DNA of 64,000 nucleotides from Schizochytrium sp. TIO01 (Eukaryota; Protista; Bigyra: Labyrinthulomycetes): the NCBI GenBank assembly GCA_004764695.1, contig SMSO01000014.1:7188470-7252469 (forward strand), in the 5' to 3' direction. The position numbers and the translations under genes were made by a program. The stretch's first letter is position 1, and every line of letters begins with the position of its first letter. A model generated the notes under the pieces. The model saw nothing but the letters and a program-made list of their open reading frames with translations. It was not told where the DNA came from and did not search any database. Shown here piece after piece: positions 1-40,898 of this stretch.

Positions 1-3000
1 ACGTAAACTACTTAGGTAGTGTACCAGCAGTACTACAAGCACCAAGCACTAAAAAGAAAGAAAGAAAAAGCTTGGTCCTGACTATTACGATAGCTTTCCC
101 TCGTGAATGATTCCACAAACGTACTCTAAAGTTTGAAGGTTCTTGCACCCCTCGAGTGCCTTTGCGACGGCCTTTGCGCCCTTCGAGCCAATGTCGTTCC
201 CAGAAAGACTGTGAGTATAAATGAATAAGTTTGTTTTGTTCATTCGTTGTCAGGAAAGACAGGTCCAGTCAGTTGATCCTGTTTTGTTTTGTTTTTCCTC
301 ACAATAAAAAGCAATCAGCTCTTCTGCTGCTGCTGCTGCTGCTGCTGCTGCTGCTGCTGCTGCTGCTGCTGCCTATCAAATTATATAGAGATTTCCTTTT
401 GCCCTTCCTTCTTCTCTTTGTAAAAAAGAAAAGACTTCTTTGTCTTTCTTTGTGTACCCAACTACACCAGCAGTACTACAAACACCAAGCACTAAAAAGA
501 AAGAAAGAAAAAGCTTGGTCCTGACTATTTCGATAGCTTTCCCTCGTGGATGATTCCACAACGTACTTTAATTTTTGAAGGTTCTTGCATCCCTCGAGTG
601 CCTTTGCGACGGCCTTTGCGCCCTCATCGCCAAAGTTGTTGTTCTCAAGACTGTGAGTATAAATGAATAAGTTTGTTTTGTTCATTCGTTGTCAGAAAAG
701 ACAGCTCCAGTCAGTTGATCCTGTTTTGTTTTGATTTCTTCACAATAAAAAGCAATCACCTCTTCTTCTTCTGCTGCTGCTGCCTATCAAATTATATAAA
801 TTTCCTTTTGCCCTTCCTTCTTCTCTTTCTAAAAAAGAAAAGAGTTCTTTGCCTTTCTTAACTACGTAGGTAGTGTACCAGCAGCTCTTTCGTTTTGCTT
901 TCTTTCCCCTACTACAAACACCAACCACTAAAAAGAAAGAAAGAAAAGAGTTCGTCCTGCCTATTCCGATAGCTTTCCATCGTGGATGATTCCACAAACG
1001 TACTACAATTCTCGAAGATTCTTGCATCCCTCGAGTGCCTTTGCGACTGCCTTTGCACCCTCATCGCCAATGGTGTTCCACACGGAAGAATACCCCCTAA
1101 GACTGTGAGTATAAATGAATAAGTTTGTGATGTTCATTCGTTGTCACGAAAGACAGCTCCAGTCAGTTGATCCTGTTTTGTTTTCTTTTTCTTCACAATA
1201 AAAAGCATTCACCTCTTTTTCTGCTGGTGCCTATCAAACTATATTGATTTCCTTGTCCCCTTCCTTCTTCTCTTTCTATACAAGAAAAGCGTTCTTTGCC
1301 TTTCTAAATACCCAACTACGTAGACTACGTAGGTCGTGTACCAGCAGTGCTTTCGTTTTGATTCCTTTCCTCTACTACAAACACGAACCACTAAAAAGCA
1401 AGAAAGAAAAAGGTCGGTCCTGCCTATTCCGATAGCTTTCCATCGTGGATGATTCCTTAAACGTACTTCAGATAAGTAAGGTTCTTGCATCCCTCGAGTG
1501 CCTTTGCGACGGCCTTTGCGCCCTCATTGCCAATGTTGTTGCTTCCAAGACTGTGCATATAAATAAAAATGTTTTTTTTTTTTTTTTTTTTTCATTCGTA
1601 AGGAAAGACAGGTCCAGTCAGTTGATCCTGTTTTGTTTTCTTTCTCCCCACAATAAAAAGCAATCACCTCTTCTTCTGCTGGTGCCTATCAAATTATATA
1701 GATTTCCTTTTGCCCTTCCTTCTTCTCTTTGTAAAAAATAAACGAGTTCTTTGCCTTTCTAAATACCCAACTACGTAGACTACGTAGGTCGTGTACCAGC
1801 AGTGCTTTCGTTTTGATTCCTTTCCTCTACTACAAACACGAACCACTAAAAAGCAAGAAAGAAAAAGGTCGGTCCTGCCTATTACGATAGCTTTCCCTCG
1901 TGGATGGTTCTACAAACGTACTCTAGATAAGTCAGGTTCTTGCATCCCTCGAGTGCCTTTGCGACGGCCTTTGCGCCCTCCCAGCCAAAGTTGTTCTCAG
2001 AAAGACTGTGAGTGGGTATAAATGAATAAGTTTGTTTTTTCATTTGTCGTTAGGAAAGACAGCTCCAGTCAGTTGATCCTGTTTTGTTTTGTTTTTCTTC
2101 ACAATAAAAAGCAATCACCTCTTCTTCTGCTGGTGCCTATCAAATTATATAGATTTCCTTTTGCCCTTCCTTCTTCTCTTTGTAAAAAGGAAAGACTTCT
2201 TTGCCTTTCTAAAGTACCCAACTACGTAAACTACGTAGGTAGTGTAGCAGCACTGCTTTCGTTTTGATTCGTTTCCCCTACTACAAACACGAACCACTAA
2301 AAAGCAAGAAAGAAAAAGGTCGGTCCTGCCTATTACGATAGCTTTCCCTCGTGGATGATTCCACAAACGTACGACAAAAATTGAAGGTTGTTGCATCCCT
2401 CGAGTGCCTTTGCGACGGCCTTTGCGCCCTCATCGCCAATGTTGTTGATACAAAGACTGTGAGTGTAAATTGATAAGTTTGTATTTTCATTCGTTGTCAG
2501 GAAAGACAGCTCCAGTCAGTTGATCCTGTTTTGTTTTATTTTTCCTCACAATAAAAAGCAATCAGCTCTTCTTCTTCTGCTGGTGCCTATCAAATTATAT
2601 AGATTTCCTTTTGCCCTGCCCTTCCTTCTTCTCTTTGTTTAAAAAAAGGAAAAAAAAGAGTTCTTTGCCGTTCTTAAGTATCCAACTACGTAAACTACGT
2701 AAGTAGTGTACCAGCAGTGCTTTCGTTTTGATTTCTTTCCCCTACTACAAACACCGCTAAAAAGAAAGACAGAAAAAGGTTGATCCTGCCTATTACGATA
2801 GATTACCCTCGTGGATGATTCCACAAACGTACTTCAGATAAGTCAGGTTCTTGCATCTCGCGAGTGCCTTTGCGACGGCCTTTGCGCCCTCATCGCCAAG
2901 GATGTTGCTATCAAGACTGCGAGTATAAATGAATAAGTTTGTTTTGTTCATTCGTTGTCAGGAAAGACAGCCCCAGTCAGTTGATCCTGTTTTGTTTTCT

Positions 3001-3370
3001 TTTTCCTCACAATAAAAAGCAATCAGCTCTTCTTCTTCTGCTGCTGCTGCCTATCAAATTATACAGATTTCCTTTTGCGCGCGCTTCCTTGTTTTCTTTC
3101 TAAAAAGGAAAATAATTCTTTGCGTTTATAAAGTACCCAACTACGTAAACTACGTAGGTAGTGTACCAGCACTGCTTCCGGATCCCTACTAAAACACAAA
3201 ACCCTCAAAGCAAAGAAAGAAAGAAAAAGGTTGGTCCTGCCTATTATGATAGCTTTCCCTAGTGGATGATTCCACAAACGTACTGTAAAGTTTGAAGGTT
3301 GTTGCATCCCTCGAGTGCCTTTGCGACGGCCTTTGCGCCCTCACTACCAAAGAATTTACAACTGAGACTG
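1..3370. repeat. Tandem array A (~440-460-bp units = 84-nt LRR exon + intron)
   Basis: Recurrent blocks such as ccctcgagtgcctttgcgacggcctttgcgccctc and gactgtgagtataaatgaataagtttg at regular spacing. Confidence 0.97.
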
Positions 3371-39400: not shown

Positions 39401-40898
39401 ACGTATAATGTATTGCTTATCATCATTCAATCAAATCGCCAGTCTTGGAGGGAACGATATCGGCTCAGAGGGCGCCAAGGCAGTGGCTGCGGCGCTGAAA
39501 GAGAACCGGTCGCTGACATCACTATCGTAAGTTGTCTACGCAACACCACAGCTCATGGACTTGTTTGTACATGATGCTTGGTTTGTTGTTTGTTGGGTGG
39601 GTCGGTGTTGTTTTGCAAGTTTATGCAATCGCTTGTTTGTTTGATGGATGGATGGGTTGTCTGTTTGAGTGAGTATACATCCATCGAACAAAGAGCAAAA
39701 TGACAACACAACAAAGATAAATGCTGAAAGCCAACCTAGATCACTCACGTCCATGCCTGCATGCGTGCATCTATTGTAATATGTAACGTGTAATGTATTG
39801 GTTGCCATCATTCAATCAAATCGACAGTCTTTTTGGCAACTATATCGGCTCAGAGGGCGCCAAGGCAGTGGCTGCGGCGCTGAAAGAGAACCGGTCGCTG
39901 ACATCACTATCGTAAGTTGTCTACGCAACACCACAGCTCATGGACTTGTTTGTACATGATGCTTGCTCTGTCGTTTGGTGGGTGGGTCGGTGTTGTTTTG
40001 CAGGTTTATGCAATCGCTTGTTTGTTTGATGGATGCATGGGTTGTCTGTTTGAGTGAGTATCATCCATCGAACAAAGACCAAAATGACAACACAACAAAG
40101 ATAAATGCTGAAAGCCAGCCTAGATCACTCACGTCCATGCATGCATGCGTGCATCTATTGTAATATGTAACGTGTAATGTATTGATTGCCATCATTCAAT
40201 CAAATCGACAGTCTTCAAAGCAACTATATCGGCTTAGAGGGCGCCAAGGCAGTGGCTGCGGCGCTGAAAGAGAACCGGTCGCTGACATCACTATCGTAAG
40301 TTGTCTAAGCAGTAGCTCGTGGACTTGTTTGTGCATGAGACTTGGTTGGTTGGTTGCGTGGTGGGTTGTCTAGTGTGCTGTTTTGCCGATGTTTTTCTTC
40401 GCGCCATTGCAAGTTTGTTGTGGAATTGTTTGTTTGGTTGAGTGTGGATCTAACAGAGAGCATGATAACATCAAAGATTAAATGAAACTGTATCGGCAGT
40501 ACTGTGGGTGCCTTTTGATGACGTGAAATTGTTAGCTAACGAACGGAGTTGATGTTATTTGGTTTTTACTGATTTCTAGGATGGACGAGTTTACGGATGA
40601 AATGTGTGAGGAGCTCGAATTGAATAATCAAATTTGTTCTGCAAAGACAAGAAGGACAAGTCTTATACAGATATTTCGTGAGCTTCGTTGTATAAATGTT
40701 GTAAACGATGGACTTTCTCTACCGTTTTCAGTAAAGCGTAGTATTCTTACACAAGCTTGGCCTGCGAACAGGTCTTGTATGCCGAGTTCAAAAAAGGAAT
40801 ATATTGCTGCGCAGAAAGTAGAGCTTGATTTGCTGGAAGCTGCAAACGTTGCCTTTCATGCAACATTGGGATGTCTAGGCCCTTACATATTGAAATAA
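36437..40898 (+). CDS. Multi-exon RI-type LRR protein, family B, copy 2 (9 LRR exons; 379 aa spliced)
   Basis: Exons 36437-36501, 37032-37115, 37519-37602, 37904-37987, 38289-38372, 38674-38757, 39058-39141, 39443-39526, 39828-39911, 40212-40295, 40580-40898; all phase-2 GT-AG, no stops. Confidence 0.9.
36520..36812. repeat. (GCTT)n microsatellite with periodic GTTT variants, intron 1 of LRR-B copy 2
   Basis: Direct read; more than twice as long as in unit 1. Confidence 0.97.
36813..40340. repeat. Tandem array B, unit 2 (384-385-bp period)
   Basis: Exon starts 37519, 37904, 38289, 38674, 39058, 39443, 39828, 40212. Confidence 0.97.
37387..37467. repeat. (GCATCTATT)n 9-mer minisatellite in an array-B intron
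   Basis: About 9 copies; present once in sister introns. Confidence 0.93.

Follow-up and report, generated by a model that had tools for sequence, protein, structure and literature searches.

Leucine-rich repeat genes with one exon per repeat in the ribosomal DNA spacers of Schizochytrium sp. TIO01 encode candidate intracellular recognition proteins

Tandem Arrays in the rDNA Units Consist of LRR Exons

The stretch of Schizochytrium sp. TIO01 DNA analyzed here (the window; 64,000 nucleotides (nt), C13:7188470-7252469) belongs to a 7.46-Mb contig, whose end is about 210 kb away, in an assembly of 64.07 Mb and 37 contigs. Rfam searches place in it two full copies and the start of a third copy of a 31.6-kb block bearing ribosomal DNA (rDNA). 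Each unit contains two divergent genes that flank a 5S rRNA gene, one for leucine-rich repeats (LRRs) with a protein kinase and RING-like fingers (genes A and C) and one for LRRs with a short tail (genes B and D; Table 1). The start codons of genes C and D are 1.77 kb apart, and 3.7 kb separate the end of gene D from the rRNA operon of unit 2, which lies downstream on the same strand. A reading of the letters alone (the sequence-only reading) had proposed that the spacer repeats are arrays of genes with one exon per LRR, and the gene models bear this out.

Every 377-451-bp repeat contains one LRR exon, below also called a cassette. The window holds 32 of them: eight or more in A (cut by the window start), eight in B, seven in C and nine in D. 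They were found by scanning for cAG, 84 or 99 nt and GT around an LRR-like translation, with the sixth exon of C placed by sequence inspection. All 32 are preceded by cAG and followed by GT, are in phase 2-2 and are stop-free, and all are 84 nt long except one of 99 nt. The donor sequence is GTAAGT in B and D and GTACGT in A and C. The first base of an LRR exon completes a split codon as its third position (T in 31/32), and its last two bases open the next codon; as all introns are in phase 2, any LRR exon can follow any other. When joined, the exons of B, C and D give complete open reading frames (ORFs) without internal stops and with GT-AG at every intron (local script). The joined models were used for this frame check only, and domain and homology searches were run exon by exon.

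The sequence-only reading had also claimed matching start and terminal exons. Start exons are present in all four genes and small terminal exons in B and D; gene C ends instead in a linker exon and a 2689-nt kinase-RING exon. Beyond gene A, further exons of the class shared with gene C (A/C class) lie just outside the window at C13:7186015 and 7184316, and the kinase exon of gene A is found at C13:7180679-7183372, with one in-frame TAA. The introns contain simple repeats: a (GCTT)n tract in intron 1 (32 copies in gene B, 5500-5629; 73 in gene D, 36521-36813) and, within the arrays, (GATG)25 in gene B (8320-8418) and the 9-bp repeat TGCATCTAT x 9 in gene D (37385-37467).

TABLE 1. Features of the window and splice joints found in contigs of sequencing runs (X1, X4, X7). 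Arrays were delimited with Tandem Repeats Finder.
Feature	Position	Strand	Details
Array A	31-3343	-	Period 451 bp, 7.3 copies
Array B	5700-8338	+	Period 377 bp, 7.0 copies
Array C	31859-34422	-	Period 419 bp, 6.1 copies
Array D	37457-40366	+	Period 385 bp, 7.6 copies
Gene A (partial)	125-3605	-	A/C class, 451-bp repeat; start exon 3550-3605 and 8 LRR exons
Gene A LRR exons	3284-3367, 2833-2916, 2373-2456, 1922-2005, 1467-1550, 1004-1102 (99 nt), 567-650, 125-208	-	
Gene B	5423-9284	+	10 exons, 351 amino acids; start 5423-5487; 8 LRR exons 5844-5927 to 8586-8669; terminal 8966-9284
Gene C	28400-34667	-	10 exons, 1244 amino acids; start 34615-34667; 7 LRR exons; linker 31247-31651; terminal 28400-31088
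Gene C LRR exons	34350-34433, 33931-34014, 33508-33591, 33089-33172, 32676-32759, 32247-32330, 31824-31907	-	
Gene D	36437-40898	+	11 exons, 379 amino acids; start 36437-36501; 9 LRR exons 37032-37115 to 40212-40295 (385-bp units); terminal 40580-40898
Joint, last LRR exon of C to linker exon	31651/31824		X1, X4
Joint, linker exon to kinase exon	31088/31247		X1
Joint, LRR3 to LRR6 of C	32330/33508		X1, X7; exon skipping or paralogue
Joint, LRR to LRR	33575/33934		X1, X7
18S-5.8S-28S operon, unit 1	13058-18574	+	Rfam
18S-5.8S-28S operon, unit 2	44630-50151	+	Rfam
5S rRNA gene between divergent genes A and B	4855-4973	-	Rfam RF00001, 96.5 bits
5S rRNA gene between divergent genes C and D	35885-36003	-	Rfam
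Other 5S rRNA genes	Starting 26836 and 58413	-	Rfam
Degenerate kinase exon, third unit	61670-63874	-	Frameshifts, 3 TGA and 1 TAA; residues 162-895; tblastn match split over three frames
tRNA features (115-nt match / tRNA-Arg(ACG) gene)	19269-19383, 50851-50965 (+); 21115-21189, 52699-52773 (-)	+ / -	One pair per unit

Gene C Is Spliced at the Predicted Boundaries

The stretch is contained in 24 sequencing runs, none of which is recorded as RNA; the label RNA-like is a guess for runs with 20-40 Mb of contigs, and runs with about 64 Mb behave like DNA. Contigs of three RNA-like runs from three studies (X1, X4, X7) and of the DNA-like run X19 were compared with window positions 30000-35800, a segment free of rRNA genes. 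The joints listed in Table 1 coincide with predicted boundaries and have the ends CT..AC, which is GT..AG read on the minus strand; X19 has none of them. The joints of X19 are non-canonical and skip whole repeat units (32927/33798, 32941/34254). A bin made up of intron alone (33686-33879) is uncovered (depth 0) in the three RNA-like runs, against a depth of 1975 in X19, with hundreds to thousands in the adjoining exon bins. Several joints of X7 contain 8-12 replaced letters that equal the junction codon and hypervariable patch of another cassette (minus strand), and are therefore LRR-to-LRR exon junctions of paralogous transcripts. Splicing between LRR exons had been anticipated by the sequence-only reading.

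Transcript collections add to this. The MMETSP transcript ORF P0025 consists of the 3' end of a 385-bp-type intron (translated) and one LRR exon spliced to the terminal exon; a search with it for longer multi-LRR transcript ORFs returned tail ORFs only. P0021, a protein of 250 amino acids from another marine protist (MMETSP), has contiguous LRRs and then a tail that shares 40% identity with the one in genes B and D. It comes from outside this genome, and the tail-type architecture is therefore older than this genome. P0021, P0023, and P0024 are MMETSP and JGI records.

RI-Type Repeats Are Joined to Three Types of Output Domain

All 32 exons read L-x-x-N-x-I-G-x-E-G-A-K-A-V-A-x-A-L-...-L-x-x-L, with a period of 28 residues. 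Ribonuclease-inhibitor-like (RI-like) LRRs are units of 28-29 residues, in which LxxLxLxxN/CxL is followed by a helix xxxGxxxLxxxLxxn, and the repeats are of this type (Pfam LRR_6). A single exon matches LRR_6 with E 0.015, under the cut-off, as expected for one repeat, and P0021 matches chains of LRRC34, ribonuclease inhibitor, NOD2, and NLRP proteins (1e-22 to 1e-8).

The repeats feed three types of output: a helical tail of 105 amino acids, a kinase with RING-like fingers, and, at other loci, Roc-COR-A-TIR. The tail is encoded by the terminal exon of genes B and D, and AlphaFold2 models it as two long helices (a hairpin) with a predicted local distance difference test score (pLDDT) of 68.5. 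It has no match among Pfam families or in the ESM Atlas, and HMMER over 1.84 billion representatives returned, besides transcripts of the same species, only the MMETSP protein P0021 (40% identical) and two false matches of a repetitive kind.

In gene C, the last LRR exon (31824) continues in frame into a 405-nt linker exon (phase 2-2) and from there into the 2689-nt terminal exon, which belongs to a 925-codon ORF (28400-31177, minus strand) downstream of array C. This exon encodes a protein kinase (Pfam Pkinase, 1.1e-28) and two RING-like zinc fingers. The kinase motifs are HCD in place of HRD (non-RD), DFD, and APE. The Cys-rich tail has about 18 conserved Cys/His, invariant across three homologues; its last finger matches the RING of RNF4 with E 6.4e-5 and parkin with 0.33. 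A check for a RING1-IBR-RING2 (RBR) triad with a catalytic cysteine gave weak Pfam matches only (IBR_2 E 0.77, Sina_RING 0.035); an RBR E3 ligase is a possible assignment. The AlphaFold2 model of this tail from a three-sequence alignment (pLDDT 49.6) was too poor to use. Neither Pfam nor the ESM Atlas gave a match for the linker exon or for residues 1-436 of the kinase exon.

The linker exon (31247-31651) contains an in-frame tandem duplication of an intron-like segment and a short exon; the paralogues at loci L004 and L014 have a single exon of about 190 nt. One segment of it (31319-31471, 153 nt) has GT..AG ends and could be spliced out in frame; X1 contigs retain it, and it encodes a hydrophobic 19-mer (Kyte-Doolittle 1.92). 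A transmembrane reading of gene C was rejected, as this lone 19-mer stems from the copy-specific linker duplication and is absent in L004 and L014. No signal peptide was found, the N-terminus is not hydrophobic, and the set of features that defines plant-type LRR receptor kinases, namely a signal peptide, LRRs outside the cell and a transmembrane helix ahead of the kinase, is not seen. Because there is no signal peptide and the hydrophobic stretch is copy-specific, the proteins are predicted to be cytosolic. The window genes have no NB-ARC or NACHT domain and no conserved transmembrane helix, and no Roc-COR (ROCO) domains occur in the four genes.

Such domains are found at locus L015 (3282-7036, minus strand; C24:4063741-4067495), where an 840-codon exon with Roc (5e-17), COR-A (1e-10), and TIR_2 (4e-12) domains continues the frame of three B/D-type cassettes, whose introns are the usual ones. 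A separate two-cassette gene of the tail type lies directly downstream of it. Of the 42 TIR matches in the genome, many are no more than a few kb away from LRR arrays or tail exons. The LRR-kinase-RING nature of the minus-strand genes, the use of the cassettes in Roc-COR-TIR genes and the spread of the family beyond the rDNA spacers had been overlooked by the sequence-only reading.

The Family Is Large and Mostly Intact

A genome scan for the exon consensus, as the sequence-only reading had suggested, uncovered a large family. First-look candidates number about 1050 for the B/D-class exon and about 417 for the A/C-class exon. The tail exon has 98 genomic matches (95/98 stop-free, 35-100% identical to the window copy), and the kinase exon at least 51 copies (44/51 stop-free, 60-100% identical). 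The repertoire would comprise about a hundred or more genes and more than 1000 cassettes, and it extends beyond the rDNA spacers in the strict sense.

For a closer look, the window was combined with 20 loci picked via the tail exon, in which LRR exons were found by profile searches. Arrays in this sample have 2 to 20 exons, and 250/261 LRR exons are intact, that is, 84 nt long, AG/GT-flanked, in phase 2-2 and stop-free. The frequent stops and frameshifts that would have spoken against genes are not seen. As a random stretch of 27 codons is stop-free about 27% of the time, 32/32 in the window and 250/261 in the wider sample are far beyond chance.

Diversity Is Concentrated in Five Codons

The 205 intact B/D exons comprise 177 distinct sequences and 164 distinct signatures at five positions. 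Entropy is 3.2-3.7 bits at positions 2, 3, and 5, where 14-18 residue types occur and G, S, Y, W, R, D, N, K, and E are frequent; position 8 has 1.9 bits, the junction codon 2.2 bits and every other position less than 1 bit. The strand encoded across the splice junction reads L-[x]-L-[x]-[x]-N-[x]-I-G-[x], and the variable residues are its x positions (LxLxxNxI). In solved LRR proteins the x positions of LxLxxNxL line the concave binding face. The hypervariable residues therefore most likely lie on the concave face, a placement taken from the standard LRR model rather than from a structure of these proteins. The A/C class is likewise hypervariable and varies additionally at positions 25-26. 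From nucleotide 11 onwards, identity is 99% for many A/C exons located on other chromosomes, whose first ten bases do not align.

Nucleotide diversity is 0.571 at the hypervariable sites, 0.051 in the exon core and 0.074-0.110 in the introns (120 nt each side), where none of 238 columns reaches 0.5. At the four hypervariable codons within the exon one stop was seen, against about 58 expected from base frequencies. The contrast holds between close copies as well. Among unit pairs whose flanking introns diverge by less than 1%, 32% of hypervariable nucleotides differ (a 45-fold excess), and in the 410 unit pairs with less than 2% intron divergence 1139 of the differences at hypervariable codons are nonsynonymous and 18 are synonymous. 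At position 8 the variation is a dimorphism of GAC and TCA, codons that differ in all three bases. No base-specific bias was seen at the hypervariable sites.

The hypervariable sites straddle an intron in the DNA and are adjacent in the protein strand. This arrangement, together with the quiet adjoining intron bases, argues for selection on the protein and not for a local DNA hotspot. Diversifying selection on the protein is the favoured explanation of how the diversity of the patch would be maintained, because single variable codons are interleaved with invariant ones on both sides of the intron and avoid stops.

Introns and Scaffold Codons Are Homogenized Between Copies

Copies of the rDNA unit are about 96% identical outside the arrays, whereas the arrays are only 80-86% alike. 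By segment, units 1 and 2 are 98.4% identical in the rRNA operon, 98.1% from 28S to 5S and 91-93% in the spacers beside the LRR genes. Repeat number also differs between the units (8 against 9 in B and D, 8+ against 7 in A and C), as the sequence-only reading had noted along with differences in content. The window kinase exon shares 99% identity with copies on contigs C30 and C34, and only 82-85% with its two neighbours on C13. The tail exon of locus L001 (9413-9727, plus strand) is identical to the gene B tail over residues 1-23 and to the gene D tail over residues 24-105, which on sequence comparison marks a recombination breakpoint between genes on different contigs. Loci L005, L006, and L007 share runs of identical cassettes in a common order, and cassettes 2-3 of gene D are repeated as its cassettes 7-8.

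Intron diversity (0.07-0.11) is close to that at third codon positions of scaffold codons (0.077). Intron-encoded small RNAs were considered as a reason for the intron conservation and rejected: Rfam finds nothing in the arrays, and as the introns are no more conserved than the scaffold third positions, homogenization suffices. That introns and scaffold codons are alike across chromosome ends would call for gene conversion, unequal crossing-over or end duplication. Homogenization alone would erase the diversity of the patch, so something would have to maintain or regenerate it. The proposal of a repertoire built by rDNA and subtelomere recombination is supported in part, by footprints of ectopic exchange and unequal crossing-over; nothing somatic or regulated was indicated in the assembly and run comparison, data that cannot exclude somatic variants.

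Relation to Known Systems

LORE-TEARS of Aurantiochytrium limacinum MYA-1381 are repeated spacer elements without GenBank similarity, which were proposed to help maintain chromosome ends (10.1101/2023.06.15.545109). Group 0 has about 9 units of about 385 bp from 5S to 18S, and group 5, which lies between one 5S gene and the next, about 5 units of about 421 bp (10.1101/2023.06.15.545109). Arrays D and B fit group 0 and array C fits group 5 (A being a 451-bp variant), a likeness in period, copy number and position only, drawn from the text of the paper without sequences. The genomes are also alike in TTAGG telomeres, rDNA at chromosome ends and size (about 62 Mbp there, 64 Mb here); TTAGG repeats have 1898 matches in the present genome against 3 for a control, and the TTAGGG pattern has 0. 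The difference is that the elements seen here are exon-intron arrays of spliced genes, and groups 1, 2, and 3 are not in the window. The preprint was reportedly published later as Collier et al. 2023 in Curr Biol. The preprint text makes no mention of coding capacity, and the word 'leucine' is absent from it (10.1101/2023.06.15.545109). If the two are the same, LORE-TEARS at every Aurantiochytrium chromosome end would be protein-coding arrays and not anonymous spacer, and gene predictions for Aurantiochytrium would then miss a hundred or more genes.

Families with one exon per LRR are already known from Tetrahymena and from Ectocarpus. The sequence-only reading had referred to the Ectocarpus work and to the LORE-TEARS, and both papers agree with what it stated (PMC3341825, 10.1101/2023.06.15.545109). 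In Tetrahymena, about 50,000 LRR exons of exactly 90 bp have spread through ectopic recombination; over 96% of their introns are in phase 2, and some of the genes are fused to kinase domains (PMC6564038). Common to them and the present family are the single fixed-length exon per LRR, the extreme phase-2 bias, copies in the thousands, the kinase fusions and, as proposed here, unit duplication by ectopic recombination. The present exons are 84 nt long, their introns of about 300-370 nt are homogenized, and they lie in rDNA-bearing chromosome-end blocks of a stramenopile; moreover, their diversity is limited to five binding-face codons and far above the intron level, and no LINE-like partner was seen. 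In the LRR-ROCO genes of Ectocarpus and other brown algae each LRR has an exon to itself (72 nt in Ectocarpus), exons are shuffled and sites on the concave face are under positive selection; these genes were put forward as candidate immune receptors (PMC3341825, PMC11378527). Both they and the present genes are from stramenopiles, with one exon per LRR, variable concave-face residues and a Roc-COR partner (here at L015). The Ectocarpus repeats are of a 24-residue LRR class, whereas those described here are of the RI class, encoded in 84 nt and phase 2-2, and the same cassettes also feed tail-only and kinase-RING genes within rDNA spacers. As exon lengths (84, 72, and 90 nt) and LRR classes differ, an origin independent of the Ectocarpus and Tetrahymena families is at least as likely as a shared one.

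The variable lymphocyte receptors (VLRs) of lamprey and hagfish are incomplete germline genes, assembled somatically from flanking cassettes. There too, LRR cassettes that vary on the concave strand carry the diversity; the present genes, in contrast, are complete in the assembly and give no sign of somatic assembly. Plant clusters of nucleotide-binding LRR receptors (NLRs) and LRR receptor-like kinases (LRR-RLKs), and animal NLRs, share with the present family RI/NLR-class LRRs, large fast-evolving clusters that frequently lie close to chromosome ends, outputs through a non-RD kinase or TIR, and evolution by birth and death, and differ from the window genes, which are without NB-ARC, NACHT, signal peptide or conserved transmembrane helix. 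Full-text searches for LRR genes of Aurantiochytrium or thraustochytrids returned nothing on this family, nor did a word search of a 2025 mirusvirus paper (PMC12606086).

New here are the lineage, the 84-nt RI-class cassette, the site at rDNA chromosome ends between polymerase I and III genes, the coding interpretation of a published non-coding element, the sharp contrast between patch and introns and the kinase-RING partner. The family would be a third, probably independent, protist case of one exon per LRR after brown algae and Tetrahymena. Its signature is unusually clean, with binding-face codons near saturation and introns 90-95% identical, and its polymerase II genes, which encode candidate recognition proteins, lie amid polymerase I and III genes within rDNA-bearing repeats.

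Candidate Recognition Proteins and Alternative Explanations

We interpret the repeats as spliced RNA polymerase II genes for cytosolic RI-type LRR proteins that are candidate intracellular recognition proteins, with a probability of about 0.7. One 28-residue LRR per symmetric phase 2-2 exon would allow units to be gained, lost and exchanged without a break in frame. B/D cassettes (385 bp) feed the genes with the 105-residue tail and elsewhere the Roc-COR-TIR genes, and A/C cassettes (about 420-450 bp) the genes for kinase and RING-like fingers. The genes sit in segmentally repeated rDNA-bearing blocks at chromosome ends, where unequal crossing-over would alter array length (2 to 20 exons) and exchange between ends would keep introns and scaffold codons about 90-95% alike genome-wide, while diversifying selection would keep five codons of the concave LxLxxNxI strand almost randomized. 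The outcome is most likely a germline repertoire of binding modules coupled to signalling domains, a combination of TIR, Roc-COR, and kinase-RING that resembles innate-immune receptors of other lineages.

Several points weigh against this interpretation. Non-immune roles are frequent among RI-type LRR proteins, and the best solved-structure matches of P0021 are axonemal LRR proteins. Selection over targeted mutation is argued from the pattern of variation. Some decay is seen, with about 4% of cassettes broken as well as several kinase exons, among them the window's third copy and that of gene A, and the 20-locus sample covers copies at least 70% identical to the gene D tail. The RNA label of the runs is a guess that the pattern of joints and depth supports, and the runs were compared as contigs, not reads, which gives presence without level or full-length isoforms, and many joints derive from paralogues and not exactly from gene C.

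Expressed LRR families with a role other than defence could produce much of the same picture, for example in allorecognition or in telling self from non-self in a mating-type-like way, in inhibition of diverse nucleases or toxins, or in regulation linked to the rDNA, the nucleolus or chromosome ends. The range of partners bound by RI-type LRRs is wide, ribonuclease inhibitor is among the closest solved matches along with axonemal proteins, the genes lie inside rDNA blocks and nothing ties them to infection. We consider such a role possible but on balance unlikely, as TIR, Roc-COR, and non-RD kinases are, by analogy with other lineages, typical partners of the innate-immunity type, and binding-face diversification this extreme is known mostly from host-parasite or self/non-self systems. 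The published structural reading of LORE-TEARS, under which the arrays would be chromosome-end DNA with incidental or decaying LRR-like frames, fits the strong homogenization of the introns and is very improbable in view of the 96% of cassettes that are intact, the roughly 50-fold depletion of stops at the most variable codons, the full ORFs with start and terminal exons, the joints in RNA-like runs and the MMETSP transcript ORFs. A structural role of the DNA could coexist with coding; it cannot replace it.

The patch at the 5' end of the exon might also owe its diversity to targeted mutation or templated copying, possibly somatic or clonal as in lamprey VLRs. That the hypervariable difference is already 45-fold in excess at intron divergence below 1% would suit such a process, the three-base dimorphism at position 8 suggests copied blocks, and the DNA-like joints of X19 skip whole units. 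Such joints are, however, equally explained by paralogues or strain differences. The interleaving of variable sites with invariant codons on a scale of 3-6 nt, their position on both sides of a 300-nt intron with quiet adjoining bases, which fits protein-level selection, the lack of a base-specific bias and the completeness of the genes in the assembled germline, unlike VLR loci, all make a targeted process improbable. Equally doubtful to us is the bolder idea that the location at rDNA and chromosome ends is no accident and that recombination, intrinsically frequent there, has been harnessed, with frame-neutral cassettes reshuffled among about 50 chromosome ends so fast that clonal lineages differ. 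If true, it would equip a unicellular stramenopile with a continuously renewed set of intracellular receptors that act through TIR, ROCO, and kinase-RING outputs, the equivalent in a protist of anticipatory immunity built on cassettes. For candidate recognition proteins with a germline repertoire, the interpretation that we prefer, the defence-receptor idea is directly testable, as Aurantiochytrium is culturable and transformable and is persistently infected by mirusviruses (PMC12606086).

Other Features of the rDNA Units

The third unit differs from the two full ones in a 1.65-kb segment at 59908-61598, between the 5S gene and the kinase exon, that is exclusive to it and resembles nothing elsewhere in the window or in the 20 other loci. 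The LRR array belonging to its degenerate kinase exon would fall past the window end. The adjacent rRNA operons differ by 58 mismatches and 22 gap openings in 5.5 kb, and the spacers upstream of 18S are 91% identical; this is unusually heterogeneous for neighbouring rDNA units and may be real or a long-read assembly error. A run of about 30 A (minus strand) lies at about 35270-35300, in the 1.2 kb between the 5S gene and the start of gene C. Each unit also contains a tRNA-Arg(ACG) gene and a 115-nt Rfam tRNA match that ARAGORN does not call and that is possibly an intron-containing tRNA.

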